Below, one piece after another: positions 3,286 to 22,537 of a DNA stretch of 64,000 nucleotides. The notes under the pieces are model-generated. The model made no database searches and was not told the origin of the DNA. It saw only the letters and a list, made by a program, of their open reading frames with translations. Source of the DNA: Penicillus capitatus. Lineage: Eukaryota; Plantae; Chlorophyta. Where the stretch lies: assembly GCA_965649825.1 (NCBI GenBank), contig OZ287699.1, positions 960,477 through 1,024,476 on the forward strand, in the 5' to 3' direction. Within the stretch, counting starts at the first letter, position 1. Each line of letters begins with the position of its first letter. A program made the position numbers and the translations under genes.

Positions 3286-3929
3286 TCATAACCACTCGCG
3301 TGGCGGCGAATCCGTTTGAAATGGCAGTCGCATAGGGATAGGCGTCGTGTCTTCTTTGACTGCCTCTTCTCTGCACCAAACCTGCCGTGGGTCCTCGTGC
3401 GATGATTGGCCTACCTGAGATCCAAAGGCAGTGCCATGATGGCATCTCTCGCAATTCGCTCTTTCATCGTCATATCTGCTTGCCACTGTCTAAAGGCAGC
3501 AAGTTAGTGAAGCGACAGTATGATAGAGGACAACCTGTGCTGACGCATTTTTTGGCGGCTGTATTCCTTGGCTTTCTCTTTTGCATAGGCGAGTTCTTTC
3601 TTCGTCATGGGTGAGGCTGGTCTCGATCTCGGTTTCGATGTCGGCTGCGAAGGGGGTGGTGTCTCGAAGAGGCGGAAACAACGTTGCATCTTCTGTTCGA
3701 TTTTAGAATCGGTGAACTTCGGTGCTGGTTGAAACTTTTTTGTTTTCTGCGTCTTCTTCTGTTTTGTGCCGCTGGATTTGGACGACTTCTTCGTTTTCGT
3801 CGAACCTTTCGCCAAATGCCGCTTCTGTAATCCACTCCCTGTCCATGCAGATGTCAGAACTGCCGACCAAGGGACGAGATCGGCAGAGAACGGTAAAAAC
3901 GTTCTGAGGCAACGCCGAGTGGCAATCAT
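3286..3929 (-). CDS. MRPL40: Mitochondrial ribosomal protein mL40-like
   Basis: Arg-rich presequence MIATRRCLRTF. Motifs AKEYSRQKMRQH, ARDAIMALPLDL, EAVKEDTTPIP and TDSPP resemble plant mL40 (AKEYSR..MRKH / AIEALP / DLTPFP / TPP). Two short introns. Confidence 0.75.
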
Positions 3930-4007
3930 GAAGAACAGTACGATGTGACAGGCACTCTGCTTTCGGCGTCTTATCGCACTGGTACCAGATGATTCCACTG
4001 CCACGCC

Positions 4008-4434
4008 ATGCCAGAGACTCGTTCTGCAAAGAGAAGGAAAGTTGAACGTTCGGAACGCAAAGGGACAAAGAGAAAAGAAAGCAAAAAGAAAGAGTCCACA
4101 AATAAACCACAAAAGAAGCAGAAATCTGAAGCACCTGCAGGTCACTCTCGACACGCCACTACCTGTCTTGTCATCGTTAATGTACTAGGCCGTTTGGACG
4201 AAGACGAGACACTCGAGGCTTTTGATTTGAATCGCAGATTCGGTCCCTGTGTCGGAATCTCCCGTCTGAATCGGTAATGTATTCTGTATGGCTTTTGTGT
4301 GACGCGTGGATTGGCATAGATGGAAGCGTGCCAAAAGATTTCGATTGGCGCCGCCCGAGATCGTGAAAGAGATTCTGGAGAAGTACGATGTGAGCAACGT
4401 CAAGAACAGATGCCTTTGGGAGGATCGTGTTTAA
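4008..4434 (+). CDS. POLD4: DNA polymerase delta subunit 4 (p12)
   Basis: Three exons give a Lys-rich N-terminus followed by LEAFDLNRRFGPCVGISRLNRWKRAKRFRLAPP...CLW, the POLD4 signature FD...FGPC.GI.RL.RW.RA. Confidence 0.88.
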
Positions 4435-4739
4435 CAATACCTCCTTTGTGGATTTAATGTATGTAGACAGACAAATCTATCATCCATTGTCCATCTATAA
4501 TGAAAATCGCATTCTTTCCATACAGCACAGCTACCAGCACTCTTCCATAATGGATCTGCCCGTTTTCATGGAAAAATTTACCCTCTATCATAAATTTGTG
4601 CGACATACAGCTATAGCGCATGCCAATCGAGGATGTTGTGTAAAATTCGAATTGGCCTTATTCCCAATTCGAGCTTGAGGTAAAGTTCGACAAGGGTCGG
4701 ATCAGGAAGAGGTGAAAAAGAGAATCTAAAACTGGCTGT

Positions 4740-5729
4740 TTATAACATCGATTCTCCCAGATGCTCGGGATTGTTGTGCCTCTCCGCTCTGAAGTGCGGG
4801 ACATAGTTTGGACCCGGTCCATGCAACAACAATGCACCGATGGCTGCCAACACAGCACCTATAGCCTCCGAAGATATGTAGTACCTACAGAAAAGCATAA
4901 ACCACAAGGCCCCTTTAAAAAGCTCTTACCAAAACACATCCGACTGACACTGCCTGTCAGAATTGATATTGGCTACGGTTGGCGAAATAATACGAGCTGG
5001 ATTCATCACACCACCAGAGTGTGGCACCCCTATACATGAAGTAAGCATAAAGCATATATCCAAGTGTGAGATAGAGTGGACCTGCCCACATGCATCCCGT
5101 CAACGCTATACCGATCACCAAAGGACTCATATCGCCGTGACCAGGTGACACGGTTGCCGAATAGACCACCATGATGAACACCCACGTCATGATGATCTCC
5201 CATGAGAACAGCTCCCACAAATCATCGGACGAATCTGTTGACTCCTTGTCAAAACAGTAAGAGCCTCCGGACATGGAAAAATGACCAAGAAGCGCCCCAC
5301 ATATGCCACCTGCCACCTGTATAGGCGGTCACGACGCTGTGAACGATAGGAAGACGTGCCTGAGCAAAGACATAGAGAATGCCTTTGACGATATTCATGT
5401 GGCCACTTGCGGTCATGGACAACGTGACGGCGGGATTCAAATGACCTCCCGAGATATGCCGCGTGAGATACACTATAGAGGACATGAGTGTCATCGTTTT
5501 GCCTAGGAGACGAGCGAAGAGGGATACCGAGAGACGTGTAGATGAATCCGTTGGCCACAGAAATCGTTGCCGCCGTTGTATTGTCCGTGTAGTCCGGCTG
5601 GTCATTGATAGTGTCAACCGGCAACGCGCCGGCAAACAGTTGAAAGATTCCCGAACCAATAAATTCCGCTATCAGCGCGCGTGCGAGTTTGCGATCGGTC
5701 AGGGCTTGAGGAAAACGTAGAAGCTTCAT
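4740..5729 (-). CDS. Aquaporin (MIP family)
   Basis: ALIAEFIGS, ISGGHLNPAVT (first NPA), WEIIMTWVFIMVVY and, after splicing, SGGVMNPAR (second NPA). Ends ...GESML-TAA. Confidence 0.92.
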
Positions 5730-5860
5730 GGTTTGTCGGAGACAAAGTGGAAAATCGGACGTCGGTCGGTGGCTCCGTTTAATGCACTTGATGGCGCAGT
5801 TCTTGCCTTCCGATGATGCGATGAACGTGTCCAGCATGTTCCACCACATCAGCCGGAATG

Positions 5861-8150
5861 TCAGGCATCTCTTCCAAAATATTCTGCAGAGTCGTTTTCA
5901 GAAAGAGGCAGAGATGGAAGCGTGCGGTATACCTGCAAGTGAGGATCGCCGAATAGAAAGTCATCATCGTCATCTTCTGGATCTCCCATGACTGGCGTGT
6001 CAGGTTCTCTGAAGGTATCTTCTCTGGAAAAGGTGCGTGTCCATGGCCATTTCCAGGAACGGTGGCAGTTGATGTGGGCTTGGCACATGGGACACTTGGG
6101 TGCACGATGCAGACCCGCACATTGTTCCAGCCACTCCATTAAGCATGAAGTGTGATAGGCATGGCCACACTTGAGTGTACAGCCACTCTTGTTGTCTGCG
6201 GTATCGATATCACCCCGTGCAGAGCTGGGCACCTTCAGAGGGCCCCAACAGATCGCACAATTGCCACCCATGCGTTCCACATGCTCAGCCGTCATTGGGC
6301 TCAATTCTTCCAACATCGTGCAGGTGAAGGACTGGGTAATTGTCCGATAGAGCCACGAGATCGGAGCGCCCCAGAAGATCAAGGAGACAAAAGACGAGAA
6401 GATAATGCCGGCTCCATAGATCCAGCAAATAGCAGGGAAAGTGTAGAGCACGACGTACTGGTAGATGGAAGAGAGACTTGAATTGACTCGAACCAGCATT
6501 CGTGCGGCTTGGGGAGGGTTTCTGAAGAGGAGATAGTTGACGTAGACCGTCAACAAAACAAAGAACTTTTCACAAGAGAACCGCATCATGGCCAAGGTGG
6601 CTTCAATCAACGGAATCATGTGACGATGATCCGCATCCTAAGCAACCGTCCACCTTCCATGCTGACAAAGCAGATGGCTGGACGCACTCACTTTCATGCG
6701 TCCGAGTTCTTTCGAATGTTTGAACAGCGCCCACTGAAAGACGTCTCCTTGATGCAGAGAACTGCAAACGGATTCGTAGTTTTGTGTGTAGATAGATACA
6801 TAGGACTCAACAGTCGATGGACTGATCATATCACGTACCCCCACATCAACTAATTCAGAGAGACTGTCACGAGCAGCACAGGTTTCCGTCGTCGGTGTTG
6901 CTTTCTGTTCCAGATATCGTCCAGCTTCGACGGCAAGATCGGCACGGGAGTGGACGAGGCTCTCTTGCTCGAGCTTAAGAGGAACCCACAATGAATTGAA
7001 AGCAGCAAAGCCTAACAGCACGACCAAGAACAGCATCACCCTCACATTGGCTCTGAGTCGATTGAAGAGCGTTTTCTGTTTGGGATCCATTTCCCAGTGT
7101 CGCTTAATCAAGTTCAGTGCAAGATCATCACGCCTCAAATCGTCGGCCTGTTCTTCTGGCACTACCACACGGATCTGGGGAGCGACGAGGATCTTGAGTC
7201 GCGACGCCACAATCTGCATGGATGATATGGATCACACATCGTGCTCAGAGAGTGGTATGGGAACAGACTTGAACACACGGAAGAATGACAAGCAGTTCCA
7301 TGGCAAAACGCGGCACTTCGAACAGCATGGATGAGCATTCCGTCCCCCAATTCTGTTCCCAGTTATTGAGCCAATAAGGTACAAGTCTCCAGCAGACGCT
7401 GACAACGGAGTCTTTCGTGACAACCTCTTCACCAGGAAGGAGTCCACCCAGTCCCAGCAACAGTGCGAGCTTCTGCAGGCCAAAGGCAAAGGCGATTGAG
7501 AAATTCCAAATCGCGAATGCCTTCCACCATCCTAACAGGTTCCAATGAAACTGACAGGTGCAGTACTGATGCTGATGGCCACAAAAGAAGTAGACGTCGC
7601 CCCATCCTTCAAATTCCGTATCGTATTGGAGGTAATAGATAAAGTTGTAGGCGCTGAGCGTTCCCCAGTAGGCCCCAAAGCAATCCCACTTACTGAGACG
7701 CGACCATCCCATCAAAGTGGCATACAGAAACCATACTGCCACGCAGACAGGTGCCCACATAGCGATGCGGTGTTGTATCTGCGAAGCGACGATGTAGACA
7801 GCGGACGTCAAGAGACTGCCGAAGACAAAGGGATACGCGACTTGGAGACGACGCCATATCATCTTTGCATAAATCGCGTGTCCGTAGAGGAGGGTGCGAA
7901 GGAAGACAAGCGTCGTAGCAGCACGAGAAACGTCGAAATGGTTCAAATTAAATTCTGCTAATTCCTCGATTGCTTTCTTTCTTCCTTGTTGACAATGCGC
8001 TCATAATGTACGGCACAGGGGGCGCGGCACTGGAAGTAGGAAACAACAGAATTTGTCAGTGCTCCAGGCAAAGATCTTTCCTGCAGGTTGTCTGTCTTTC
8101 TGTCTGTATGTCCGTCGTTGATTTGTTTTTGTGTACACGATCACCATCAT
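5861..8150 (-). CDS. Multi-pass membrane RING-H2 E3 ubiquitin ligase (5' end uncertain)
   Basis: Hydrophobic ORFs 7245-7946 and 6638-7219 lead to an exon with CAICW...CGHAYHTSCLMEWL...CPMC (RING-H2). Joining them into one gene is inferred from ~50-nt intron-like gaps. Confidence 0.7.
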
Positions 8151-8217
8151 CACCATACCGTCATGAACGCATGTTCCCTCAAAAAATCAGCCAAACACGC
8201 AAAGATGCATGGATAGG

Positions 8218-9679
8218 TCAATTTGCAGATGATTGGTACATGGTCATGAGCCTTCGGAGTCGAAATTCAGGGCTGTTTGATAAGACATCCAGCAGGCGCT
8301 TGGCATACTTTGACTTGGTATCATCAGAAAGTTGTGTCGTGGAGATCATGTCTCGTACCGCTCCAACCACTCCTCCTTCGACCATCTGTCTCAGAGCGTT
8401 TGGATTCTGAGAGAGATAATAAAGAGCCTTCAGTGCCGTGTCCGGGACGGTAACGAATGCAAAGAAATCGTCAAAAACAAAATCTGAATAGTCGACATCA
8501 TGGTTGACAGGCGGGAGCATTCGAGCGAATTCTGCCACGACGCCTTCAGCGACGGCAACGGTTCTGCCGCGAACGTCTTCACAGAGGTACTGGATGGCTT
8601 TGGCGATTGGGTATTTGACACCGGGGTCTTCTGTTCGTCGCCAATGGCGTACCAGTCCAGGAATGCAACGATCAGCAACGAAAAAACGAAACCTGTTTCT
8701 AAATGCTAAACTGGCAATAATGAGGGCAGCTCCATCCAGCGCACGGGTCGGCAATGATTCTAGTGATGGATCTGTTACCAAAGGATTGACGATAGACAAC
8801 GTTATCTCCACTCCATGGTGCTCCACCGCATCTGCCACTTCCATCATCTTCCCGCGGTGACGATAGGCGAATCCACGGATGATGCTGAGAATCTCTCTGC
8901 GTAAGTCAAAGTCTTCCATTTTGAGCAGACTGATCAGTTCTGAAATTTTCAGCAGTCCTTTGATCTGGACGAGCAGCCGAGCAGCCGGGATTTTTAGAGT
9001 GGGTTCTTGGAGCAGGTCACGAATCGTTTCCATGTGTAACTCCTTGCGCACTTTCTTTAGTTGAGCGCCATCGATGTGTCGTGTCATTTCACGCAAGAGC
9101 ACGAGAGCCGCATACGACTGAGGAAGAGCTCTTTCGGATACCAATCTGCTCACACATTCATGCATTGACTCACACATCTCACTCTTTTCCAAACTTCACC
9201 TTGAAAGTGCAACGACATCGTAGGCAGAAACGCCTCGCGACGTGACCACAGAGAGGCAGTGGCCGGGATCATCCAGCGGTCCATAACGGTCGTTTGTGGC
9301 CGATCCTTCATGTCTGGACTCTCGAGAAAAGTCCCTGACACTACCCAACTCGATTCCTTTCTTCGATGCGTAATCATGAACAGCGTTTCTTATTGAGTAC
9401 AGTGGAGCGAGTCGCTGGCTGCTCAAGCGCACGCCTGCACAAACACACGCACAGAATATCGACATTAGGGACTGTCATCTGTGATATGGCATGACCAGTT
9501 AAAGGACACGTGTTATTTCCCATGCGAAACCACTCCTGGATACTGTGACGGTCGTAGATTTGTCCCGTTTCCACGAGAACGACCGGGTCACTCATAAGTT
9601 CACGTGACACGGGACAAAGGAACATTCCAGGGACAGAATCCCTCGAACTCTCCACATCCGTATCTTGACTCGAACTCAT
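8218..9679 (-). CDS. Plant U-box / armadillo-repeat E3 ligase (PUB-like)
   Basis: U-box VPGMFLCPVSRELMSDPVVLVETGQIYDRHSIQEWFRMGNNTCPLTG, followed by an ARM-like helical region (ORF 8218-9192). Confidence 0.88.
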
Positions 9680-10492
9680 TAGAAAAAGCGGAAACGCAAA
9701 AGATAAGCAAAGCACAAACCGTCACGTTACAAACAGCGAACGTATGGTAGTTGTGCGATAAGTATTAGCGGCGGAAGAATGCGTGAGGAGTCGTAGTGTG
9801 GCGCACGAAGGATGGTGTTGATGAAGTATGAAACGACAATCGACTTGCTGCCTATCCGCCAATCGTTGCGCGGCATGCACGAAGATTAGCGAGATTCGAC
9901 GACGTCATTGTCAATTGGACGGCCGACCACCCCAAAAAAAGCAACCCAGTACAAGGCGTCAAAAAACGACAGCAGTACAACCCGTTACACTTAAAGCAAT
10001 GAAAGGCAGATCATCCATTGCCTCTTGACTGTGACATGAAGTGGATGACACCCCACTCGGTCATGTCATCGATCGAATGGCACAATTTCTTTTTCTGCCC
10101 TTATGCGTCTGAAGCTCGCTCAGGTCGAGAGACTCCAAAGCACAGGGAGATGGATCATACTGGCGGCGATGGTGCGATGCTATGAGGCGAAACCAACCTA
10201 CACCACCTGATTACAGAGCATTGGCCGGCAGTGGATAGGGGGTCTCCAGATTAGATCGTACGGACGACACCAAATGTACACGTCATGACAGTTGTCGTGG
10301 ACTCACAGTTTGTCCCAGTGTTTGACAACACCCACATCTTCCTTTACTTGACGAATCGTATGCAAAAGATGGTCGATCAAAAGGCTTCGCTTTGTTGCTA
10401 TCAACCCAACGATTCCACATCCGTCAAAGACTCCACAAAAAAGCATTGCTTCTCGACGAACTTCCATACACTCTTTGTCCACTCTCCAGATT

Positions 10493-11325
10493 TCATTCGA
10501 CGACTTGTGTTTGTTGGAAGAAGGAATCGTGGGGTTCCATGACCTTTTGATCGTGTTTACTCGTCGTCGGTTTTAGAAGATCTTCAAACGGAACGCCGTT
10601 GTGGTACTTCTCAATCAACGTCTCAATATCCTCCACGATGCGTTGCACGGCACGTTTGGAGATATTCTTCATGAAACCGGCGCAAAAAATGGGAACGAAA
10701 TTCGGAAGCAAATCCTGAATCAACATTGCTCGCGTACCTAATACGTGACCCTATCATCATCCCACCGGCCGCCATAGCCTTACCAATAATTTTATCCGCG
10801 TCGTCTGGAGAATAGACGGGAGATAGAAACCACTCCCCGGCAAACTTGTTCATGATCCCTTTCTTGTGCAGCCAATACCTGAACCATCCATCTGTTGAGG
10901 CAAAACGGCACAGGGAGAGGTATTCACCTAAAAGTGCCTTTCTGCATGTTTCGTTCGACATTAAGGTGTGTGGAGAAGGTGATGGGTACGACGAGAAATT
11001 TGAACCCTGAAACTTGTTCCACAATGACTTTCTGCCTTCCTTCCCCATCGTCTTCCACCACCTCACGATATGGAACGGCGTAGATATCGCGAAAGACGCC
11101 TGTGTTGTCCGGATTCGAGAAAACGGTCATGAGCTGCGTAGGCGTCAGCCTGAAATCTGCGTCCATGGTTATGCGGCAGAGAAACCCTTCGTAGTCCATG
11201 ACGCGTATTTCGGAGTCTTGCCGCAACGGACGCCGTTCCTGAAGGTCGGCGAAGAGTTTTTCTCCGTTCTCGGCCATTGTTGTTACAAAAGGCGATGCCG
11301 CATGCAAAGTTGAGTACTCGGCCAA
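10493..11325 (-). CDS. DUF220 / SRPBCC (START-like) superfamily protein
   Basis: VFSNPDNTGVFRDI..YREVVEDDGEGRQKVIVEQ...FKFL and GIMNKFAGEWFLSPVY match the plant DUF220 pattern. Both ends approximate. Confidence 0.7.
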
Positions 11326-11414
11326 GCGATGATCGATGACGTGAAACGCTCGTCATCTCGCTGTCCTGTCCTTCGGACTCGTCGTTCCCTTTACCGGCGC
11401 TATCGTGTCCGGCC

Positions 11415-11990
11415 ATGGCAGGTAAGGACCAGGACTGCATCCCACTGAACCTTCACGCCAGAGATGCATGCAGAAGCAAGTGCGCCCGAGAAGCTCACCC
11501 ATCCCACTTCACCAGATATCAAAGAGAAACAACCGAGTGCCGAATCACGACAGACGATCAAACGCGAGGAGAGAATCCAAGAAGCGCCACAGATAAAGAA
11601 CGGGGAGGAAGATGACGAAGAAGAAGAGACGTGCGGGTTCTGCAAATTCATGAAAGAGGGCGGCTGCAAATCTCAGTTCGTCGTAAGACCACGATGCCTG
11701 TCCAGGTCACAACTCACGTCTGGCTTCTCGAGAATTGGATGGAATGCGTCGACAGCGAAAAGGAAAAGGGGAACGATTTCGTGGAGACATGCATGAATCA
11801 AGTGCGTCGCCTTTTTTCAGATCCGTTCGGCGTGATGCATGGAAGTACACAGATTCAAGATCTACGTCAATGTATGTTGGCCAATCCCGAATACTATCGG
11901 CCAATGTTGGAAGAGGAAGAGCATTACCTTGAGGAGAAGGAATCTGAGAGTGAGGCCATAACTTCTGAGGAACGGCAGACGGCAGCGTGA
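11415..11990 (+). CDS. GCK-domain protein (twin-Cys helical hairpin, CHCH-like)
   Basis: Spliced: EEETCGFCKFMKEGGCKSQFVNWMECVD...FVETCMNQIQDLRQCMLANPEYYRPML, the plant GCK domain pattern. Confidence 0.88.
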
Positions 11991-12420
11991 TGCGAAACAT
12001 ATGGTAAAATCTGGCAGATGGATTCATGCGGCTGTTTGGATCGTGTAAACGAATTCGAGAAAATAAAAATCGATTCACGCTTGACGACGTCGACGAAAAC
12101 GCACTTGAATAAGTGTCAGGAACGGATGGTTAGTGACTTCGCAACAGTGGCTTTAGTTGTTCTCGTCGGCGATTTATATATCTAATCTCTATCAGCGACA
12201 CACTGCGTCACCTTAAGTGCTTTGTCGCTTCATCATTATCACGCTCTCTCTTTAATGGTTGTCATAATTCTGGGTAGTCGCATCAAGTCTGCCTAGAGAC
12301 TGCCTCGTTTTCCAGGGGTCTTGTCTTCTAAAGGGCGCTTATTAACGGTTCATGAACGTTCAGAGGCATTATTCTCTGGCTCTGAAAGCCAGATTACTCA
12401 CCTGTCTAGAGAAGTCTTTT

Positions 12421-12438
12421 CACGTGTTACCTATAAAT
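12421..12438 (+). promoter_or_regulatory. Candidate G-box plus TATA box upstream of the signal-peptide thioredoxin
   Basis: CACGTG (12421-12426) and TATAAAT (12432-12438) lie ~95 nt upstream of ATG 12532, in a segment absent from the sister copy. Motif match only. Confidence 0.4.
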
Positions 12439-12531
12439 CGGCATTTCTGAAGCTGAAAACGAATCTGCTCGGTAAGCTTGAAAGTCTTGCACTGTTAGTC
12501 TGTCAAGCACGGCGCAGCTGGAGCGACTATC

Positions 12532-13007
12532 ATGCTTTCTTTCAAATTTCCTATCGTTCTGTTGTTCGTCGCGCATTTCTCACTTGGCAGCACGATCGTG
12601 ACGAAAGTAACAAGTGAAGCTGAATTTGACGAGCACATCAAGACGTCGAAGGAAAATGGAACAGTGGTTCGTGACGCCGTCGGCCATCTCGGCTTCACCT
12701 GAGATTCTGCCCGTAGGTCGTTGTGGAGTTTTTCGCTTTGTGGTGCGGCCCTTGTAAACTAATGTCGCCAGTATTCGCAACGCTAGCAGAACAAAAAGAT
12801 TACTCTCACATGAAGTTCCTCAAGGTGGACGTCGACGACGTGCAGGGGCTCGGAGATCAATGCGGCATCAGTGCCATACCGACTTTTCAAGTCTACAAGG
12901 CAGGCGAAAAGGTTGGCGAAGTCAATAATGACCCAAATGGACTCAAAAAACTTCTCGACAAATATAGGCTGCCGAACGATCTATTATTTTCCTTGGTTCG
13001 TTACTGA
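12532..13007 (+). CDS. Derived thioredoxin paralog with N-terminal signal peptide and C-terminal extension
   Basis: Exon 1 (12532-12666) MLSFKFPIVLLFVAHFSLGSTIVTKVTSEAEFDEHIKTSKENGTV. 50-nt GT-AG intron (12667-12716). Exon 2 VVVEFFALWCGPC...KFLKVDVD...IPTFQ...LFSLVRY-TGA. Frame intact, WCGPC retained. Confidence 0.85.
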
Positions 13008-13125
13008 ATGGGTATGCGAAACAATCGATTGAATGAGCCTGGAAAACCCTTCGGGTCGTGTGAGCATCTCTGTTATTTCGCCCATACTGATTTCCCACGC
13101 GTGTCCACCTGAAACACGACGCTAC

Positions 13126-13306
13126 TGTGGTGCGTAAAAGCGAGCGAGAGGTAAAACAGAGTTTTCGTTACAGGATACGATTCGTGTTTGCAAAACATCG
13201 TATTTATACCACCCAGCATGACGTTATGATGTCGTCATGCTTCTTGTAATGATGTGACTGGTGTTTCTTTCCTTCCCCTTCCCACTTCATCGTCAGGTCC
13301 ACGACA
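13126..13306 (-). repeat. 3' LTR
   Basis: TGTGGTGCGT...CCACGACA on +; identical by eye to 17844-18024. Confidence 0.97.
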
Positions 13307-16135
13307 ATCGCTTCCCTGCGCTTGACTCCGATGAAAGAAAGGTCGGAGATGATCTCGGTGGGTCAAGAAAGGCTTCTTGGACTGAGGATTGAAAAGATAA
13401 TAGAGCTGAGGGGAGAATTGTTTGTGTATGATGTAGGGTCCAAGCCATTGGGGGGCTAGCTTGTTGCCATGCGTGTGGGCATGTTGGTGGTCAAAGAGGA
13501 GGACAGAAGAACCAACTGGGAGAATCGAGGAGCGCTCCGGGTGCGCCTGTTGACGTTGTTGTTGATGTTGCATCTGTTGGTCGATGGCTTTCCAGCGAGC
13601 GGCGAGAATGTCATGGTGTCGGGCGGGATGCGGTTCTTCTGATTGTGGCGTGCTGATGGATGTGCGGGGATCCGGAATAGGATGCAGGCGCGGCTGATAT
13701 CCGAATGCGGTCTGGGCGGCACTGAGCTGGGTGATAGCATTCGGGTGTGCGTTGAGGAGGGCTTGGACTTGGGGGAGGTGGCGGGCCCATTTGCCTTGTG
13801 TCGGGAGGCGCTGGAGACGACGGATGATTTCTTGGTTGAGGCGCTCCACGGTCCCGTTGCATTGCGGCCGGTATGCAGGGATGGTGCGGCGATGGATGCC
13901 GCGAGTGGTCATCCAGTTAGATAGCTGGTTGCCAACGAAAGCTGGTGCGTTGTCGGTTTGGATGGTGGTGGGGTTGCCAAAGAGTGTCGTCCAGTGGTCC
14001 AGGAGTTTGATGATAGCTGTGGCATTGGCCTGGGATGATGCGGAGAGGAGGCAAAAGCGAGTACAAAGGTCGACGGCGGCGAGAATGAAGCGCGCGGAAC
14101 CGTCGGGCTTCATAGGGCCGATGACGTCCAGGCCAACACACTGGTTCATGTGCTGCCAGGTGTTGTAGGAGGGGGCAACTGGTGGATCATGTCTGGCGAA
14201 GCGCTGGCATTGGGGGCAACTGCGTACCCACTGTTGGACATGGGAGGTAGCTTGCGGAAAGTAGATCATGCGCTGAAGCTTCTGAACGGTGGTCTGGGCC
14301 CCGTAGTGACCGCTGTCTTCATGTGCGAGGGTGAGCCAGCGCGGGATTTCGTGTGGATCGAGGCAACACGGTGTCCAGAGAAATCCGTCGGCCGAGTGCT
14401 CGAGACGGTCATGGCGGAGGCGAAAAAACTGGGCGCGGTGCTTGAGGCGGGCGCGTTGCTGCGGCGTCAGATCGTCAGGGCAGCGGGAGGTGCGCAGGAA
14501 GTTGTCCATCTGGAGGTACCAGCTGGGCCAATCGAGAGGCTGGGCGTTGATACGTCGTGCGGGAGCCACTACTGGGGTCTCCGGGAGTGTCTGGCGCCAC
14601 CATTGGCTGCGACTGAGAAGGTCGGCGATGACGTTGGCCACGCCATCTACATGTTTCACGCGACCCGCGGCCAAGTTGAGTGCGTCCAGATGGCGTTGAA
14701 CGAGGAAACTCTGGTCCTTGCTTCCGCTGGCTTGCTGTACAACAGTGGCATCTGTGAAGATGGTGAGGTGTTTACCAAGGATGTCGTGCCGGACTTCTCT
14801 GAGCGCCCGTTCGAGGCCTAGGAGTTCTGCTTTGCCACTGGAGCGGAATTGTTCGCGCTGAAACCCCCCTGCCCCAAGGCGGATGAGCTGCGTGGTCTTG
14901 GCGTCAAAGAGGGCGAAACCAAATCCGTCTCTGCTGGCGTCGACGTACAGGTCGACGGAGGCCCCGATGGCGTCTGGTCGGTTGTACCAGACGCGTTCAA
15001 AGGACCGGATGAGCGTTGTCCACCGGCCGGGGTCTTCTTTCCAGTATCGTTGTATTTCTATGGCTTCAGCGTTGGAAAGCTTTTGAAGATCCGCTAGGCT
15101 CTTAGCATTGAAGCGACAATAGTTGAGTAGCGTGCGGAGCACGCCGAGAAAAGAGCGGACTTCGGCTTTTGTCTGTGGCGGTGTCGCCCTGAGTAGCTGC
15201 TGCATTGTCGTCTGGGGAGGCAGCACCCCTTGCCGCGTGAAGCGGTGCCCCAGGAACTCTATCTCTTCTGCTCCGTACTTGCATTTCTTCGGGGATGCTG
15301 TCCATCCGTGCTTTCTGTATACCGTCAGGAGTTCTGCAACTGCCTCCGCAAGATCCCCTTCTGTCCGTGCACCGACGCACACGTCGTCAGCGTAGCTCTC
15401 GATTGCTGCCCTTATCCCCTTATGCGTCAGTAGGTCCCGTGCTTCAGCGATGGTCGTCTGGACCGCCTGGTCGAAGAACGCCATCGAGTTGATCCAGCCC
15501 ATGGGCAGTCTAGTAAATGCGTAGGGCTGGCGGTCAAAGACTGTGACGAAATACGGCTGGAGATCTTCAGCGAGCGGGATTTGGTAAAACCCGTGCCTGA
15601 AGTCGAACTTTGCGAAGATGCGCATCCCAGCAAGACCCTGCTTCGCCCCTTCCCGGTGCATGGGAAGTGCGGGTCTTCGTGTTGTCAACGTGTTGAGTCC
15701 TCGGAAGTCTAGTACCACTCGCCTCTCGAGCGAGTCCTTCTTCGCGACGGAGAACCATGGTATGACGTGCTTCGGCTTCCCGTGGAATCTCTTCACAATC
15801 TTGGCGTCTATGAGTTGGTCGATCTCCTTCCGGCAGGCCGCAGTTTCGGCAGCGAACGCGTATGGGACTTTCGTGGCTACCGAGTGCAATTGTCCCTGTA
15901 CGTCGTCCATGCTGACCTTCCATCCCCGAAAACGTCCAATTCCTTCACGGATGACGTCTGGGAACTTGGTCAGCAGCTGTTCCATGCTGCAGCAGTCATT
16001 CGTCTTGTTATGCGACAGCAGTCCTGACTGCAAGTCTACTGCCGCGTGGGAAAAGATCTTCTCGTGCCACGGAGTTGATGCTGGTTCCCGTCGCAATCGC
16101 GAACCGTGTAGCCCACTCCTGCTTGTGCCGGCACT
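13235..16135 (-). CDS. pol: Pol polyprotein: reverse transcriptase, RNase H, integrase
   Basis: RT (RRVVLDFRGLN, KFDFRHGFYQIPL, RLPMGWINS, YADD, FLGH); RNase H (YVDAS, AEL, IFTDA, NVIADLLSR); integrase (H-x4-H...CPQC, GLDVIGP, QTDNA, VERLNQE). The frame is open from 16135 and the stop lies inside the 3' LTR. Confidence 0.96.
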   Translation of the reverse strand, partial: SAGTSRSGLHGSRLRREPASTPWHEKIFSHAAVDLQSGLLSHNKTNDCCSMEQLLTKFPDVIREGIGRFRGWKVSMDDVQGQLHSVATKVPYAFAAETAACRKEIDQLIDAKIVKRFHGKPKHVIPWFSVAKKDSLERRVVLDFRGLNTLTTRRPALPMHREGAKQGLAGMRIFAKFDFRHGFYQIPLAEDLQPYFVTVFDRQPYAFTRLPMGWINSMAFFDQAVQTTIAEARDLLTHKGIRAAIESYADDVCVGARTEGDLAEAVAELLTVYRKHGWTASPKKCKYGAEEIEFLGHRFTRQGVLPPQTTMQQLLRATPPQTKAEVRSFLGVLRTLLNYCRFNAKSLADLQKLSNAEAIEIQRYWKEDPGRWTTLIRSFERVWYNRPDAIGASVDLYVDASRDGFGFALFDAKTTQLIRLGAGGFQREQFRSSGKAELLGLERALREVRHDILGKHLTIFTDATVVQQASGSKDQSFLVQRHLDALNLAAGRVKHVDGVANVIADLLSRSQWWRQTLPETPVVAPARRINAQPLDWPSWYLQMDNFLRTSRCPDDLTPQQRARLKHRAQFFRLRHDRLEHSADGFLWTPCCLDPHEIPRWLTLAHEDSGHYGAQTTVQKLQRMIYFPQATSHVQQWVRSCPQCQRFARHDPPVAPSYNTWQHMNQCVGLDVIGPMKPDGSARFILAAVDLCTRFCLLSASSQANATAIIKLLDHWTTLFGNPTTIQTDNAPAFVGNQLSNWMTTRGIHRRTIPAYRPQCNGTVERLNQEIIRRLQRLPTQGKWARHLPQVQALLNAHPNAITQLSAAQTAFGYQPRLHPIPDPRTSISTPQSEEPHPARHHDILAARWKAIDQQMQHQQQRQQAHPERSSILPVGSSVLLFDHQHAHTHGNKLAPQWLGPYIIHKQFSPQLYYLFNPQSKKPFLTHRDHLRPFFHRSQAQGSDCRGPDDEVGRGRKETPVTSLQEA

Positions 16136-17841
16136 TCAAAGATTGTGGTCTTCCCGGTGATGCGGACCGGCTCTTTGCGGTGATTTGTGAGTGTCAGCGT
16201 GGAAAATGTCTCGTACTGGACACCGAGATGGACTGAGAAGTGCGGTGCAACGATGGGCGTCCTTTTGTGTGTCATCGATTTGGGAAGGACAATTGGCGTT
16301 TTGATCATCCTGCTTTCTGCCGGTCCGAGCACTACGGATCGGTTGAGAGGGATCTGAATCCTGTCCCCTTTGATTCCTGGCAGATGAGCCACTCTCTCTG
16401 TGATCCTGCCAACTTCTTCGTGGATTATTTCGTTGACGGCGTCTTTATCGGCCTTGGGTCCTGCGAAAAGGCATTTCACGTGGCGTCCACGAATGCTGAC
16501 CGAGCGATTGTGTGGATGTGCCGAGATTTGATTCTCGACCATCGCGTCAATCCCCAGCAACAGATCGTATCCGGGTTTTGGGAGTACTAGGCACTCCAAT
16601 CGGAAATCCTGGTTCGTCGACTTCTCGACAGCAACGTCCACTCCACACCTGCCCGTAACCTTCGCTGTCTCCCCGTGAGCGAGAAGGAGGCGTGTCCCGT
16701 CTTGTTTGATCTCGAGTCCCAGCTCCTTTGCCAACGCAAGGGACATGATTGAAGATTCGGCTCCCGTGTCGACGAGCGCGTCTATTCTTCTCGGATATCC
16801 GAGATGGCTCTGAGCCACCAATCCCAACTTCATAACCCTTCGTTTTTCCCTCTTTCCTTTCGCCGTTGCCTTGGCCATATATGCGAAAGAGGTGTCTTGT
16901 TCCATTACTTCCTCCTGCCCTTCGCTGAGTGTCTCGCATATCTGTTCCCCACTTCCTTCGGGCATCGAGTTCTCCACTACGAATGCACGACGACCTCCCC
17001 ATCTCCTTGGCTGCGTTGTGGGTCTTCGATTTCCGGTCTGTCCGTCACCATTGTTCATGAGCCTTTGAAGGAATCTGAGCATGTTCTGTGCTTCCCGGCG
17101 TGAAGTCTTGCATATTTCACGCGCCCCGACCATGACTCTTCCTGCATTCGTGATGGCCCCGAAGTTGATGGCCCCGTCACTTCCGACGACTCTCCCGTCT
17201 GTGGCGGCGTTGGCTTGTACAACGCCCATGTCGACCTCCATGAGGTCCTCATCTGCTTCCTTCGGCGGTGCACTTGACTCCCAGAAACTTGCGTTCCGGA
17301 GTACGGTGCTCATGTCTGCTACAGTCGCCGTGGATGGGAGCGGTACGCAGAGCCTTCTGAGGTTCCCTGGCAGGCGCCGGTATAGCGTCTTTACCTGCGT
17401 CTCTCTCGACGCGGTCGTCCCCGCGCATGTGGCCAGGTACCTGTCCACAAACTCCAGCCAGTTTTCTCCTTTGGCCTTCGTCATCCTTCCGAGTCGCTCC
17501 TCCGCTGATATCGTGGGAGCCGGACACGCTCCAACGACTAGCTCCTTGACGATACGCCATTTGTCGTCCGTCCTGACGTGCCCTAGGTTGGCACCAAAGA
17601 AAGCGTGGACCGTCGCTGCTGGTCCAGCGAATGCCGCATTAAAGGCGGCGAGCCCGTCAAAGTGTGGCTCCACTCTCTCTAGGACTCGGCGGACGAGGTC
17701 AAATGCCGGCGACCTCGGTTCCAGTCTCTGGATCACGTATTTGACCCGAGGACGGTAATCGTCCTCAACAAACGCTGCTGAGTTGAATAGGGACGTGAAC
17801 TCGTCACGGTCCATTTTTGATATATGCAGCTCCGAAACCAT
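16036..17841 (-). CDS. gag: Gag - aspartic protease polyprotein with a C-terminal dUTPase-like segment
   Basis: ATG at 17841 (MVSELHISK). Capsid-like EERLGRMTKAKGENWLEFVDRY, DLMEVD, protease ALVDTGA and LLLGID. No CCHC knuckle seen. Confidence 0.9.
   Translation of the reverse strand: MVSELHISKMDRDEFTSLFNSAAFVEDDYRPRVKYVIQRLEPRSPAFDLVRRVLERVEPHFDGLAAFNAAFAGPAATVHAFFGANLGHVRTDDKWRIVKELVVGACPAPTISAEERLGRMTKAKGENWLEFVDRYLATCAGTTASRETQVKTLYRRLPGNLRRLCVPLPSTATVADMSTVLRNASFWESSAPPKEADEDLMEVDMGVVQANAATDGRVVGSDGAINFGAITNAGRVMVGAREICKTSRREAQNMLRFLQRLMNNGDGQTGNRRPTTQPRRWGGRRAFVVENSMPEGSGEQICETLSEGQEEVMEQDTSFAYMAKATAKGKREKRRVMKLGLVAQSHLGYPRRIDALVDTGAESSIMSLALAKELGLEIKQDGTRLLLAHGETAKVTGRCGVDVAVEKSTNQDFRLECLVLPKPGYDLLLGIDAMVENQISAHPHNRSVSIRGRHVKCLFAGPKADKDAVNEIIHEEVGRITERVAHLPGIKGDRIQIPLNRSVVLGPAESRMIKTPIVLPKSMTHKRTPIVAPHFSVHLGVQYETFSTLTLTNHRKEPVRITGKTTIFEVPAQAGVGYTVRDCDGNQHQLRGTRRSFPTRQ
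17829..17840 (-). promoter_or_regulatory. Primer-binding site, probably tRNA-iMet
   Basis: TGGTTTCGGAGC begins 3 nt after the 5' LTR and differs at 2 positions from the plant iMet PBS TGGTATCAGAGC (one would be a G:U pair). Confidence 0.7.
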
Positions 17842-17843
17842 TT

Positions 17844-18024
17844 TGTGGTGCGTAAAAGCGAGCGAGAGGTAAAACAGAGTTTTCGTTACAGGATACGATT
17901 CGTGTTTGCAAAACATCGTATTTATACCACCCAGCATGACGTTATGATGTCGTCATGCTTCTTGTAATGATGTGACTGGTGTTTCTTTCCTTCCCCTTCC
18001 CACTTCATCGTCAGGTCCACGACA
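17844..18024 (-). repeat. 5' LTR with TATA box and TGTAA poly(A)-like signal
   Basis: On the element strand TATAAAT (17926-17920) is followed by TGTAA (17890-17886); TG...CA termini. Confidence 0.95.
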
Positions 18025-18126
18025 CTACTGAGACGTCTCATGGAGTGAAGGGACGACGTGCCTTCTTGCTGACAGAGACGCCAAATGTGTTTGACCTCGG
18101 CCCTTTGCTCTGATGTCAGTCGATCC

Positions 18127-19005
18127 ATGGCGTTTTCCCCTGAGGGTCGTCGCGAAATGACGAGATGTCGATCTGCTTCGAATCCCTGTCCGGCATCGAG
18201 TCACCCAGAAGGGTGCAGTGGGCAACATGCATCGTGCACCTGAGAAACGCTCGAGAGATGCAGCGCCTCTGCGCTCCGATGCCAATGGCTTCTTTCCTCT
18301 CGTGTCAGTGAGCTCGGAAACACCAGTCTCGCCGACAAAGACCTGCAGGGGCAGAGATGAAAACGCCTGTCCGAAAACTTATGAGTTGCATGACTCTGCC
18401 AGGTGATCGTGAAACCATCGCAGCACTATTTCTCGTTCTTCCTGGGTGGAGCCTCTCCACGCAGTCAGCTGAAACGGCACGGTCCACGGTATTGTTGCTG
18501 TGACAATGGATACACCTCGGATTTGTTGGGCTGTTCGCCATGGCGCAGGCGAACGGGACATGTCTCCAGGTCGGACCGTCGGAATCCGACGTCAGCTATG
18601 AGACGAATCTACAAGCGCGCATCTGCATAGAGCTGTTCGGTGCTGAGGGCGATGCCTGCAGCGAAGAGCAGGCGAGGTCGTCGAGGGTGCGAGGGACGTC
18701 ATGCTGTCGAGGCCCTTCGATTTTGCGGCGATGTGGGGCCACGTATCGCTCGTACCCTTTCCTCATGCGAATGCGACGTTTGAACAGCAGAGGTCCGCAC
18801 GCGGCTTCCTTCTCGTCTGGCGGCATCCGCGAATGCTGAGATGGATTCTCTGTCTGTCGACACCCATGGTTTTGTCATTCGCATCAGCGAGACGCCCACA
18901 CGTGCAGACGATCCCCACTCTAGCCCCATCATCGTTTTTACCTTCTGCGGCGATACTCACCAGCTCGCGTTTCTAGACAGATGGGCCATAGAGTCATGTC
19001 CTTAA
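18127..19005 (+). CDS. Unknown gene X, copy 1 (exon structure uncertain)
   Basis: Protein-like exons (ANGTCLQVGPSESDVSYETNLQARICIELFG; MDSLSVDTHGFVIRISE...PIIVFTFCGDTHQLAFLDRWAIESCP-TAA) separated by intron-sized gaps. No family recognised. Confidence 0.4.
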
Positions 19006-19090
19006 AGAAAAGAAGAATCATAAAATAGCACACAGTTCTATGGAGACTGTCAATGGTACAGCGTTTGCCAGATCTCTCTCTGTCTCGGTC

Positions 19091-19411
19091 TCACTGTCTT
19101 CCCATCCGTTGAAGACATTGTAGAGCTTCGGGATTTGGACGGGAATCGAGCTCTTCGTTCTCGGGAAGATCTTCGATGGCGGGTGTGACGTCGACATCGG
19201 TATCCGTTTCCTTCGTTGGCACACCGAGAGTCTGATTGCCGCCACACACACTTGCCGTTTTCTTCAGTTTTTTGCATTTCAAGGCGATGGACGAATGCAA
19301 CTGAACGGTCCGCGATCGTTCTTTCTCGAGCAGATCTTGGATGTTCCATGCCAGCCAGGGATAGAAACTCGGCACATGAGATCCTTGACGGGTTCCTTTT
19401 TGCTTCATGGA
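19091..19411 (-). pseudogene. Orphan copy of the DHHC gene 3' end, truncated at the duplication junction
   Basis: MKQKGTRQGSHVPSFYPWLAWNIQDLLEK...LQRMGRQ-stop, about 90% identical to 21287-21607; no upstream DHHC exons. Confidence 0.85.
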
Positions 19412-19420
19412 AGTACACAG

Positions 19421-19558
19421 ATTCAAGATCTACGTCAATGTATGTTGGCCAATCCCGAATACTATCGACCAATGTTGGAAGAGGAAGAGCATTACCTTGA
19501 CGAGAAGGAATCTGAGAGCGAAACCATAACTTCCGAGGAACGGCAGACGGGGGCGTGA
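19421..19558 (+). pseudogene. Orphan copy of the GCK gene last exon
   Basis: IQDLRQCMLANPEYYRPMLEEEEHYLDEKESESETITSEERQTGA-TGA with intact acceptor ACACAG; the parent gene body lies 7.6 kb upstream. Confidence 0.85.
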
Positions 19559-19695
19559 TGCGAGACATGTTGTGAAATTTGGCAGATGGATTCATGCGAC
19601 ATACCGCATCTCGTTGAGTTCTTCGCCGCTTCATCTCGGTCCCATTTAAATTTCCCGTCGTTCCGTCGTTCGTCGCGTATTTCTCTTTTGGAAGC

Positions 19696-20072
19696 ATGAC
19701 TGTGACGGAAGTAACAAGTGAAGCTGAATTCGACGAGCATATCAAGACGTCGAAGGAAAATGAAACACTGGTGCGTGACGCCGTCAGCCATCTCGGCTTC
19801 GCCTGAGCTTCTGCCCGTAGGTCGTTGTGGATTTCACCGCTTCGTGGTGCGGACCTTGTCGCATGATCGCACCACGTATCGTGGCGATGAGCGAAGAGTA
19901 CCCTCAAGTGAAGTTCCTCAAGGTGGACGTCGACGACGTGTCGGCGGTCGCAGCACGATGCGGCATCAGTGCCATGCCGACTTTTCACGTCTACAAGGCA
20001 GGCGAAAAGGTTGGCGAAGTGGTCGGTGCCAACGAAGAAGCCGTCAGGAATCTCGTCCAAAGACATCTGTAG
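19696..20072 (+). CDS. TRX: Cytosolic thioredoxin (Trx h-like)
   Basis: MTVTEVTSEAEFDEHIKTSKENETL | 50-nt intron 19771-19820 | VVVDFTASWCGPCRMIAP...FLKVDVD...AMPTF...VVGAN...RHL-TAG. Confidence 0.96.
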
Positions 20073-20324
20073 TTGAACGATCTATTATTTTCCTTGGTTC
20101 GTTACTGAATGGGTATGCGAAACAATCGATTGAATGAAACTGGAAAACCCTTCGGGTCGTGTGAGCATCTCTGCTATTTCGCCCATACTGATTTCCCACG
20201 CGTGTCCACCTGAAACACGACGCTACTGAGACGTCTCAGCGAGTGAAGGGACGACGTGCCTTCTTGCTGACAGAGACGCCAAATGTGTTTGACCTCGGCC
20301 CTTTGCTCTGATGTCAGTCGATCC

Positions 20325-21203
20325 ATGGCGTTTTCCCCTAAGGGTCGTCGCGAAATGACGAGATGTCGATCTGCTTCGAATCCCTGTCCGGCATCGAGTC
20401 ACCCAGAAGGGTGCAGTGGGCAACGTGCATCGTGCACCTGAGAAACGCTCGAGAGATGCAGCGCCTCTGCGCTCCGATGCCAATGGCTTCTTTCCTCTCG
20501 TGTCAGTGAGCTCGGAAACACCAGTCTCGCCGACAAAGACCTGCAGGGGCAGAGATGAAAACGCCTGTCCGAAAACTTATGAGTTGCATGACTCTGCCAG
20601 GTGATCGTGAAACCATCGCAGCACGATTTCTCGTTCTTCCTGGGTGGAGCCTCTCCACGCAGTCAGCTGAAACGGCACGGTCCACGGTATTGTTGCTGTG
20701 ACAATGGATACACCTCGGATTTGTTGGGCTGTTCGCCATGGCGCAGGCGAACGGGACATGTCTCCAGGTCGGACCGTCGGAATCCGACGTCAGCTATGAG
20801 ACGAATCTACAAGCGCGCATCTGCATAGAGCTGTTCGGTGCTGAGGGCGATGCCTGCAGCGAAGAGCAGGCGAGGTCGTCGAGGGTGCGAGGGACGTCAT
20901 GCTGTCGAGGCCCTTCGATTTTGCGGCGATGTGGGGCCACGTATCGCTCGTACCCTTTCCTCATGCGAATGCGACGTTTGAACAGCAGAGGTCCGCACGC
21001 GGCTTCCTTCTCGTCTGGCGGCATCCGCGAATGCTGAGATGGATTCTCTGTCTGTCGACACCCATGGTTTTGTCATTCGCATCAGCGAGACGCCCACACG
21101 TGCAGACGATCCCCACTCTAGCCCCATCATCGTTTTTACCTTCTGCGGCGATACTCACCAGCTCGCGTTTCTAGACAGATGGGCCATAGAGTCATGTCCT
21201 TAA
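20325..21203 (+). CDS. Unknown gene X, copy 2
   Basis: Near-identical to 18127-19005 at offset 2,198; only 3 substitutions seen within the interval. Confidence 0.4.
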
Positions 21204-21286
21204 AGAAAAGAAGAATCATAAAATAGCACACAGTTCTATGGAGACTGTCAATGGTACAGCGTTTGCGAGATCTCTCTGTCTCGGTC

Positions 21287-22537
21287 TCACTGTCTTCCCA
21301 TCTGTTGAAGACATTGAAGAGCTTCTGGGTTTAGACGGGAATCGAGCTCTTCGTTCTCGGGCAGATCTTCGATGGCTGGTGTGACGTCGACATCGGCAGC
21401 CGTTTCCTTCGTCGGCGCACCGAGAGTCTGTTTGCTGCCACGCACACTTGCCGCTTTCTTCGGTGCTCTGCATTTCGAGGCGATGGACGAATGCAGCTGA
21501 ACGGTCCGCGATCGTTCTTTCTCGAGCAGATCTTGGATGTTCCATGCCAGCCAGGGATAGAAACTCGGCACATGAGATCCTCGACGGGTTCCTTTTTGCT
21601 TCATGGACGATGCATTCATACTCACTGGCCGAATTTTGTGTCTCCCAGCATTGCAGCGCATTCCACATGGAATGCGCGTGGCCATCTCGGCCGGATTGAC
21701 ATGTTCCAGCGTTTGATGCACTTCCTGGAGATATCTCAGTTCGCGTTGCATCGTAATAAATTCATACGTCGTGATTTCTCGTTTTCTCAGCACCAGATGC
21801 AACGCGAGCAACATTCCGATGGTGTAACCACAGATAAGGCAGACGAGAATCTGCAATGCCAGCAACGACCGCCAGCAATTGACACCGCAGATGGAACGAC
21901 AGTCGACGAGGCGGAAAGAGGACGTATAACTGCGAAGCAGAAGATAGAGTACCGCCAGGAGATGAAGACAAAGCCATGCGACAGAGCTAAAGAGCAGTCG
22001 CAGAAATGGCCAGTAGTTTTTGGCACCGATGCATGTGTTGAGCCAAGGACAGTGATGATCGAATCCGCAAATGCATTTGTCACACACTCGACAGTGCCGA
22101 CCTCCTACCGGAGAAGGCGACTACACACATGACACAAAAGCACACGGACGAAACTACCTCATACAGAAACGGACTTCGCAAATGGTACAGTAAATCGTCG
22201 TCCCGTTTGCACCGTTTGGCTCGCGTCCTTCCTGCGGATCGATCAGACTACGACGCCATAACAGAATGCGATTCGGCATCCTATGGATGCGGCAATATCT
22301 TGCCTGGTCTTCATGAAGTCGATCAGAACAGCAAAGGCTGTAAGGAGATGCAGAAGACAGAGGAGCGACGCACAGGTGTCCCAAAGGATAACGGGTGCCA
22401 TGGAGAGAGCGAACATTGCTTCTAGACCGATGAAAGAGATCCACAGTGTCACCTGTTGTTGACAGCATTGAGTGGAGAGCAATGATCGATGGGATCTTGT
22501 GGGACCTGATAGCAATTGGGCGGCCATGAAAAACCAT
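21287..22537 (-). CDS. DHHC-type protein S-acyltransferase
   Basis: YCTICE...KHCRVCDKCICGFDHHCPWLNTCIGAKNYWPF with flanking transmembrane segments and ITTYEFI (TTxE motif). Confidence 0.93.

Follow-up and report, generated by a model that had tools for sequence, protein, structure and literature searches.

A 64,000-nucleotide stretch of DNA from Penicillus capitatus (contig OZ287699.1, positions 960,477 to 1,024,476 of the forward strand; hereafter the window, numbered from its first letter) contains two thioredoxin genes in tandem, and we investigated the left one, at 12532-13007, as a candidate for a newly secreted thioredoxin. In this copy the ancestral start codon has become ACG and a new in-frame ATG lies 20 codons upstream, so that the protein would begin with a leader encoded by formerly non-coding DNA. 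Our analyses established the duplication, the direction of the changes, the shifts of both the start and the stop codon, the retention of the reading frame and the fold, and the avoidance of conserved positions by the changes. As an explanation, we tentatively favour a translated, endoplasmic reticulum (ER)-targeted thioredoxin, to which the sequence evidence lends slightly less than an even chance.

A thioredoxin gene with shifted start and stop codons

The features of the two genes are listed below, where the outgroup is the single-copy gene of a sister species described in the next section.

12532-12666, plus strand: exon 1 of the left thioredoxin (135 nt), whose frame is opened by the ATG at 12532
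12532-12591, plus strand: new N-terminal extension of 20 codons, MLSFKFPIVLLFVAHFSLGS, of which codons 4-20 are homologous to non-coding DNA 5' of the right copy and of the outgroup gene
12592-12594, plus strand: site of the ancestral start, now ACG (Thr21); the right copy (19696-19698) and both outgroup haplotypes have ATG
12592-12666, plus strand: ancestral portion of left exon 1, with 8 differences from the right copy, 6 of them left-derived
12667-12716, plus strand: left-copy intron (50 nt), GT..AG, whose position is shared with the right copy and the outgroup
12717-13007, plus strand: left-copy exon 2 (291 nt), with the stop TGA at 13005-13007
19696-20072, plus strand: right copy, a canonical 108-amino-acid thioredoxin orthologous to the single outgroup gene (exon 1 19696-19770, intron 19771-19820, exon 2 19821-20072)

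Conceptual splicing and translation of the left copy yielded a protein of 141 amino acids, MLSFKFPIVLLFVAHFSLGSTIVTKV...WCGPC...LPNDLLFSLVRY*, one fewer than the 142 given in the preliminary description of this DNA. Laid out by its parts, the protein reads MLSFKFPIVLLFVAHFSLGS-TIVTKVTSEAEF...WCGPC...KYRLPNDLLFSLVRY. As that description had claimed, the alignment indeed placed the ACG opposite the ATG of the right copy, and codons 4-20 aligned without a gap to the right copy's upstream DNA (51 nt before the ACG). In the frame of the right copy's ATG this DNA reads ...R*VLRRFISVPFKFPVVPSFVAYFSFGS-M, and it contains an in-frame stop 26 codons up and no ATG, again as described. The new in-frame ATG at 12532 was also confirmed, and an in-frame stop 12 codons 5' makes it the first in-frame ATG. 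Furthermore, it is the sole in-frame AUG upstream of the active site; the next in-frame methionine is residue 61, past WCGPC, and a product with the active site must therefore start at 12532. This ATG has an A at position -3, and no ATG occurs in any frame over the 177 nt before it (12355-12531).

At the other end of the gene, the TAG of the right copy (20070-20072) faces a CTG in the left copy (12969-12971), confirming that the stop has moved and that the former 3' untranslated region (UTR) now encodes the 11-codon tail PNDLLFSLVRY (12972-13004). The former 3' UTR (12976-13125, plus strand) is 98% identical to that of the right copy, with 3 differences in 150 nt. The active site WCGPC (12741-12755), the cis-Pro motif AIPTF and the reading frame are all intact, and a search of the left protein for HDEL or KDEL, likewise reported as absent, found neither, the C-terminus being ...SLVRY. 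The splice sites had been called intact, and GT and AG are indeed kept, but the 5' splice site is changed from G to T at +3 (GTTCGT in the left copy only, versus GTGCGT in the right copy and the outgroup).

The extension is a gain in the left copy

A protein search with the right copy led to fragment P0108 (84% identity) on contig L002, which is syntenic with the window, about 86% identical to it over 20 kb, and carries one thioredoxin; L002 1-9714 corresponds to window 2349-12030, and L002 9517-20185 to window 19401-30053. A further contig, L003, is 99.6% identical to L002, comes from the same sample with the same coverage, also has one thioredoxin copy, and is evidently the other haplotype of the L002 organism. 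On the window's side, L001, which matches the window at 99.68% identity over 20 kb, has this left gene as well, differing at a single site, 12859 (A/G, Gln/Arg); it is a second haplotype or assembly of the window's organism. The left frame is open in both of these haplotypes. Each organism is represented by two contigs that differ by 0.3-0.4% (window 2759-23007 versus L001; L002 versus L003), a pattern that fits diploid genomes whose two haplotypes were separated during assembly of the metagenomes.

In both L002 and L003, the single-copy orthologue starts with ATG ACC GTC at the position of the right copy's ATG and has no N-terminal extension. Its upstream region is offset by a 1-nt indel from the window copies, and has an in-frame stop 16 codons up and no in-frame ATG. 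The more distant relatives P0009 and P0011 start with M-T-V and M-G-G, respectively, and carry no leader. Since the sister species has a single copy without a leader, four features must have arisen in the window's lineage: the duplication, the leader, the ACG and the moved stop. The orthologous locus thus answered the question of gain versus loss raised in the preliminary description; sequence comparison established that the left copy gained its leader, out of upstream DNA that had been non-coding before. The left copy accordingly displays the features of a start-shift duplicate: a lineage-specific duplication, an abolished ancestral start, a newly gained start, and an ancestral state known from an outgroup. 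The origin of the leader had been described as recruited UTR sequence; its source is indeed non-coding upstream DNA, as the outgroup indicates, but the ancestral spacer between the stop of the upstream gene and the thioredoxin ATG is only about 135 bp, and the source may therefore be promoter rather than 5' UTR.

The duplicated unit and the insertions around the left copy

The tandem duplication of the preliminary description is real, but its structure is more complex. Self-comparison and alignments defined a duplicated unit of about 2.2 kb, composed of the 3' end of an upstream gene (its last ~190 bp, A), a short spacer, the thioredoxin and a 1.4-kb spacer (S), and the left copy of this unit is broken by a 510-bp sequence and a long terminal repeat (LTR) retrotransposon, as follows.

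11838-12030, plus strand: A1, the 3' end of the upstream gene (stop 11988-11990) and left edge of the unit, 93% identical to A2 (self-BLAST, three-way alignment, open reading frame (ORF) translations)
12031-12540, plus strand: left-specific unique non-coding sequence of 510 bp, GC 44.5%, replacing about 41 bp of the ancestral spacer
13126-18024, minus strand: intact Ty3/gypsy-type LTR retrotransposon, 118 bp past the left stop
18025-19411, plus strand: S1, the spacer of the left unit; in self-BLAST, 18018-19411 is 97.8% identical to S2 at 20216-21607
19406-19598, plus strand: A2, a duplicated fragment of the upstream gene's 3' end, which precedes the right copy (self-BLAST, alignment)

The 510-bp sequence had no match elsewhere in the window or in the L002 and L003 loci. 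The new ATG at 12532 sits at the junction of this sequence with the shared DNA, and TATAAAT at 12434-12440, inside the insertion and 98 nt 5' of 12532, may be a weak hint of a promoter for the left gene. The retrotransposon has 181-bp LTRs that are 100% identical (13126-13306 and 17844-18024), TG..CA ends and the target-site duplication CTAC, and encodes gag-protease (16036-17937) and reverse transcriptase-RNaseH-integrase (13235-16096) ORFs. It is evidently very young, and its excision in silico restores the sequence of the right copy. Both haplotypes (the window and L001) carry the retrotransposon as well as the duplication and the 510-bp insertion, while the sister species lacks the retrotransposon.

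Two further ORFs lie at the right unit. The duplication junction creates an 87-codon chimeric ORF (19295-19558, plus strand), whose first ~39 codons match the start of ORF 21491-22132 and whose last ~48 codons repeat the C-terminus of the upstream gene in the same frame, down to its stop codon. On the minus strand, a 338-codon ATG-initiated ORF (19050-20066) overlaps the right thioredoxin and A2 in antisense orientation; Pfam gave no match to it, L002 does not preserve its full length, and it probably arose by chance.

The leader as a candidate signal peptide

The leader opens with the n-region MLSFK, continues with some 13 uncharged residues as its core, FPIVLLFVAHFSL, and closes with S-L-G|S, the h-region and c-region overlapping. 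By heuristic only, this corresponds to the classical layout of a signal peptide, with a basic n-region, an h-region within 7-15 residues, and small residues at -3 and -1. Over 9 residues, the highest Kyte-Doolittle mean of the leader is 2.92, whereas the hypothetical peptide of the right copy reaches 1.81 and the native N-terminus 0.04; the hypothetical ancestral leader peptide would be M+SVPFKFPVVPSFVAYFSFGS. The change of CCG TCG to CTG TTG (Pro-Ser to Leu-Leu), noted earlier as the origin of the hydrophobic core, was confirmed, and since the outgroup also has CCG TCG, it is left-derived. In addition, the acidic sequence after the leader is unlike that of a transit peptide, so that the secretory pathway would be the expected destination. 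These sequence features make the leader plausible as an ER signal peptide.

Evidence for constraint on the left thioredoxin domain

The left frame is open over 141 codons, a state retained by 8-9% of simulated genes after 77 random substitutions, and both left indels (+6 and -3) are multiples of three. In scoring with a thioredoxin hidden Markov model (HMM) that we built from 91 homologues, the left protein reached 112 bits and the right 162. An equal number of changes at random positions gave 67 ± 11 bits, and none of 1000 simulations reached 112. When the three divergent patches described below were kept but randomly placed, the score was 74 ± 13 bits, and 0.1% reached 112. The changes in the left copy thus avoid conserved thioredoxin positions (p ~0.001). 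Consistently, the Pfam model PF00085 matched residues 24-117 of the left protein with 84.4 bits (cut-off 23.5; right copy 102.3), and all nine invariant family columns of a 73-sequence alignment are kept.

The AlphaFold2 model showed mean predicted local distance difference test (pLDDT) values of 92-97 for the blocks across residues 21-130, in the beta-alpha order of a thioredoxin, with the leader (pLDDT 52-67) and the tail disordered and the leader outside the fold. The best sequence matches of the left protein in the PDB were thioredoxins (E = 1e-22), and the thioredoxin fold is predicted for it with confidence. With neither stops nor frameshifts, and with changes that avoid conserved positions, the left copy does not look like an unprocessed pseudogene. 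This weakens the case for a pseudogene, with which the lost ancestral start and stop are still compatible.

Uneven divergence and three hyperdivergent patches

When the differences between the left and right copies were polarised by the outgroup, 74 proved to be left-derived versus 11 right-derived. They are unevenly spread, their variance per 18-nt bin exceeding that of all 20,000 permutations, and are concentrated in three patches of exon 2.

12758-12811, plus strand: hyperdivergent patch 1, in the helix after the active site, with differences at 23 of 48 aligned nt and a 6-nt in-frame insertion
12844-12861, plus strand: hyperdivergent patch 2, QGLGDQ versus SAVAAR, which holds the left gene's sole inter-haplotype difference (12859)
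12923-12975, plus strand: hyperdivergent patch 3, with a 3-nt in-frame deletion, VVGA changed to V-NN, the C-terminal helix rewritten and the ancestral stop lost

The copies differ by about 50% in these patches, by 3-20% in exon 1, the intron and the rest of exon 2, and by 2% in the former 3' UTR. The 51 nt of former non-coding DNA in the leader carry 7 left-derived changes (14%), versus the 2% of the former 3' UTR, and the thioredoxin segments of the two units are only 84% identical, versus 93-98% for the unit flanks. In codon-based comparisons, the right copy and the outgroup gave dS 0.78 and dN 0.079 (ratio ~0.1), and the backbone of the left and right copies outside the patches gave dS 0.15 and dN 0.065 (ratio ~0.43). 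Within the patches dS was 0.55 and dN 0.89 (ratio above 1), a ratio biased upward because the patches were delimited after the data had been seen. Even so, the patches have diverged several-fold more than the neutral flanks (2-7%), too far for simple decay after the duplication to account for the pattern. The patches possibly arose by very fast, probably selected, in-situ change, or by conversion from a divergent thioredoxin elsewhere in the genome.

We thus searched for a donor paralogue. A word-indexed search with the left protein returned only P0001 (the same gene, 99%), all others being at most 50% identical, and an exhaustive HMMER search of 1.84 billion representatives likewise returned only P0001, with other matches at 49% identity or less. 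The tblastn search of the window detected the two copies only, and the best match in a JGI metagenome scan was 52%. Similarly, no protein with the left N-terminus was found in the protein collections searched, except for ORF calls on the same genome. The donor searches covered the window and the protein and metagenome collections, not the remaining genome, which leaves ectopic gene conversion a possible source of the patches.

Several specific origins of the patches were considered and rejected. Conservative replacement, as from a long-constrained donor, was suggested by visual inspection of the patch residues but was not supported, since random bases at the same positions scored as well in 28% of trials. 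Hypermutation resembling repeat-induced point mutation or deamination left no clean signature: transitions make up 19 of 28 changes in the backbone, many at CpG, and only 21 of 46 in the patches. On the sense strand, G-to-A (13) and C-to-A (7) are over-represented among the 46 polarised changes, making the patches A-rich, a bias that matched no mutational process or donor sequence found.

In the 3' flank, two sub-blocks are near-invariant between the species (window 13007-13036 and 13067-13096, 29/30 and 27/30), corresponding to ~20108-20137 and ~20168-20197 at the right copy and to ~10225-10330 in L002; the 30 nt just 5' of them match at only 15/30. A non-coding RNA in this conserved block was rejected, as Rfam gave sub-threshold chance matches only and the consensus fold had almost no covariation.

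Explanations of the left copy

In the explanation that we tentatively favour, the left gene is a lineage-specific tandem duplicate of an ordinary cytosolic h-type thioredoxin, with its fold kept but remodelled. After the duplication, the unique 510-bp sequence came to lie just 5' of the left copy, which lost the ancestral AUG (ATG to ACG) and gained the in-frame AUG 20 codons upstream, at the insertion junction. Transcription would start from the new upstream sequence, and translation from 12532 would run through formerly non-coding T-rich DNA, in which two CpG transitions (Pro to Leu and Ser to Leu) would have turned a non-coding stretch into a three-part leader. The protein would then enter the ER co-translationally, the leader would be removed, and a soluble, presumably active thioredoxin without a retention signal would be released to the secretory pathway or the medium, while its surface helices and C-terminus would have diverged very fast. 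A stronger form of this explanation holds that promoter or 5'-leader DNA gave rise to a functional signal peptide in the time since two sister species diverged, that this peptide redirected the new cytosolic duplicate into the secretory pathway, and that the patches and the tail reflect rapid adaptation to an extracellular role; each step would be legible from the ancestral state kept by the sister copy and an outgroup. Judged from the sequence, this form appears to us unlikely on balance.

A number of observations speak against a secreted thioredoxin. When the T-rich 60 nt were shuffled, 4% of the resulting sequences reached the leader's hydropathy, and the peptide that the right copy would encode, uncharged over 18 residues, is already half-way to it. 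Both the Pro-to-Leu and the Ser-to-Leu change are C-to-T transitions at CpG, which are the likeliest mutations, and the chance of a fortuitous in-frame ATG within the ~31 open codons is ~0.4, as estimated from base composition. The leader alone is therefore weak evidence and gains weight only together with the evidence for constraint on the thioredoxin domain. As for that domain, the right copy outscores it by 18 bits in Pfam, and its match does not extend into the last helix. Among the 15 near-invariant columns, with conservation of 90% or more, four are altered in the left copy: Asp to Glu before the active site (the buried Asp), Met to Ile, and Gly-Ala to Asn-Asn after strand 5. Furthermore, the particular residues of the patches bear no signal of selection, given that random bases scored as well in 28% of simulations. 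The G-to-T change at +3 may weaken splicing, and an unspliced message would stop after 56 codons. The ancestral upstream region is displaced by 510 bp and the 3' flank is occupied by the retrotransposon, and a thioredoxin outside the cytosol would have no obvious reductase partner.

Much of this would also be expected if the left copy is a young non-functional duplicate, either a pseudogene or on the way to becoming one, in which the ATG is fortuitous and the leader is merely translated T-rich DNA. We give this explanation a substantial probability, though one well short of even. The loss of both the ancestral ATG and stop, the loss of the normal promoter context between the 510-bp insertion upstream and the 4.9-kb retrotransposon downstream, and the changed splice donor all favour it, as do the replacements of the Gly-Ala after strand 5, the Asp before the active site and the Met before the cis-Pro. 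Backbone dN/dS has risen to ~0.43, compared with 0.1 for the right copy versus the outgroup; in the patches, dN is higher than dS, and the residues there are no better than random ones at the same sites. The origin of the leader in CpG transitions, acting on a sequence whose right-copy counterpart is already uncharged over 18 residues, points in the same direction. A pseudogene would owe its intact frame and fold to constraint that lasted until recently, or to gene conversion from functional templates; to this whole account we assign the same substantial probability. It has to accommodate an open frame after ~77 changes (p ~0.08, and a joint probability of ~0.01 with the two in-frame indels), the avoidance of conserved thioredoxin positions (p ~0.001), the confident fold prediction, and a frame kept in both haplotypes. 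In addition, the divergence of the gene (patches ~50%, leader 14%) is far above that of the neutral flanks (2-7%).

Rather improbable, in our estimation, is a left copy that is functional but not secreted, either cytosolic, through initiation at the near-cognate ACG or a downstream transcript, or held by an uncleaved leader as a membrane tether. The evidence of retained constraint supports this as much as it supports a secreted thioredoxin, the ACG keeps an A at -3, and the ancestral spacer of ~135 bp implies short ancestral 5' UTRs. However, initiation at ACG is inefficient, and the leader contains more left-derived change than the neutral flanks, which is unexpected if it is untranslated. 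For a tether, the uncharged stretch after Lys5 extends over ~13 residues to Leu18 (~19 to Thr24), which is rather short, or at best borderline, for spanning a membrane, and a good -3/-1 cleavage motif comes next.

Finally, an ancestral leader lost from the right copy, the alternative named in the preliminary description, retains next to no probability: it is refuted by the start of the outgroup orthologue at the right-copy ATG in both haplotypes, with the 1-nt indel, the in-frame stop and no ATG upstream, and moreover the distant relatives are also short at the N-terminus, and 7 of the 9 differences in the leader region are left-derived.

Other features of the window

GC content is ~50%. A neighbouring gene encodes a protein resembling carboxy-terminal-domain phosphatases, and its best named matches are from green plants and algae (~38% identity); in one EukProt species, the thioredoxin and phosphatase genes are 8 gene numbers apart. 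Two neighbouring minus-strand ORFs, 34124-36376 and 36998-38674, encode armadillo-repeat proteins with 12 and 6 Arm repeats (Pfam), respectively, and may represent another local duplication. The sole above-threshold Rfam match in the window is a tRNA-Ser (anticodon UGA) at 41209-41292 on the minus strand. Tandem repeats occur at 60531-60819 (144-nt unit, 2 copies, 88% matches) and at 61962-62171 (24-nt unit ACCGCCGTGGCCGAGGAGGAGGAT, 8.8 copies, 95%), and GC rises to 58% in the region of both.

Discussion

Both a start-codon shift with relocalisation of a duplicate and secretory thioredoxins are already documented. In the Arabidopsis pair PRX36/PRX72, the original start was lost, a new start was gained, and one duplicate was relocalised (PMC4202327), and the relocalisation of duplicates has been surveyed more generally (PMC2397506, PMC3879971). 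As in that pair, one copy of the thioredoxin has evolved asymmetrically at an accelerated rate and its N-terminus is a candidate targeting signal. In contrast, localisation in PRX36/PRX72 was shown with green fluorescent protein, whereas the left thioredoxin is known from sequence alone; on the other hand, its N-terminus can be traced base by base to non-coding DNA that survives 5' of the sister copy and of the outgroup gene, and the event is much younger.

In Medicago truncatula, thioredoxin s1 reaches the bacteroid through the secretory pathway by means of an N-terminal signal peptide. Its targeting to the bacteroid was reported by Ribeiro et al. 2017, as cited in PMC5786577. Like the left copy in the proposed scheme, it is a thioredoxin of a cytosolic h-like lineage sent out of the cytosol, but it is legume-specific and nodule-expressed, has known substrates (NCR peptides), and is of independent origin. 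Small WCGPC thioredoxins also act outside the cell without a leader, as in the cases of human Trx1, Verticillium VdTrx1 (PMC10102666) and Fasciola Trx1 (PMC8131638); these exit without a signal peptide, whereas the left copy would take the classical route.

The ER oxidoreductases, namely the protein disulfide isomerase (PDI) family and ERp18/TXNDC12, combine a signal peptide, the thioredoxin fold and a CxxC site. The left copy has PDI-like traits in the Glu that replaces the buried Asp and in the motif EFFALWCGPCK, but differs in having CGPC instead of CGHC, no KDEL or HDEL, and a single domain. With the PDI-domain model TIGR01126, the left protein scored 54.4 bits and the right 48.1; a shift towards a PDI-type domain was rejected, as the gain is only 6 bits and the score is far under the cut-off of 107.2.

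Should the left copy be dead, it would be a decaying duplicate of the ordinary kind, apart from its odd mosaic divergence. If it is expressed, it would be an unusually clean case of a targeting signal arising from non-coding DNA, in which the donor sequence is still visible, the outgroup fixes the direction, and the few mutations behind the hydrophobic core can each be identified. It would then also be an independent case of a thioredoxin sent to the secretory pathway, and would illustrate known principles rather than change them. The most curious feature of the locus is its unexplained hyperdivergent patches, and its main value lies in the clean polarisation by the outgroup.

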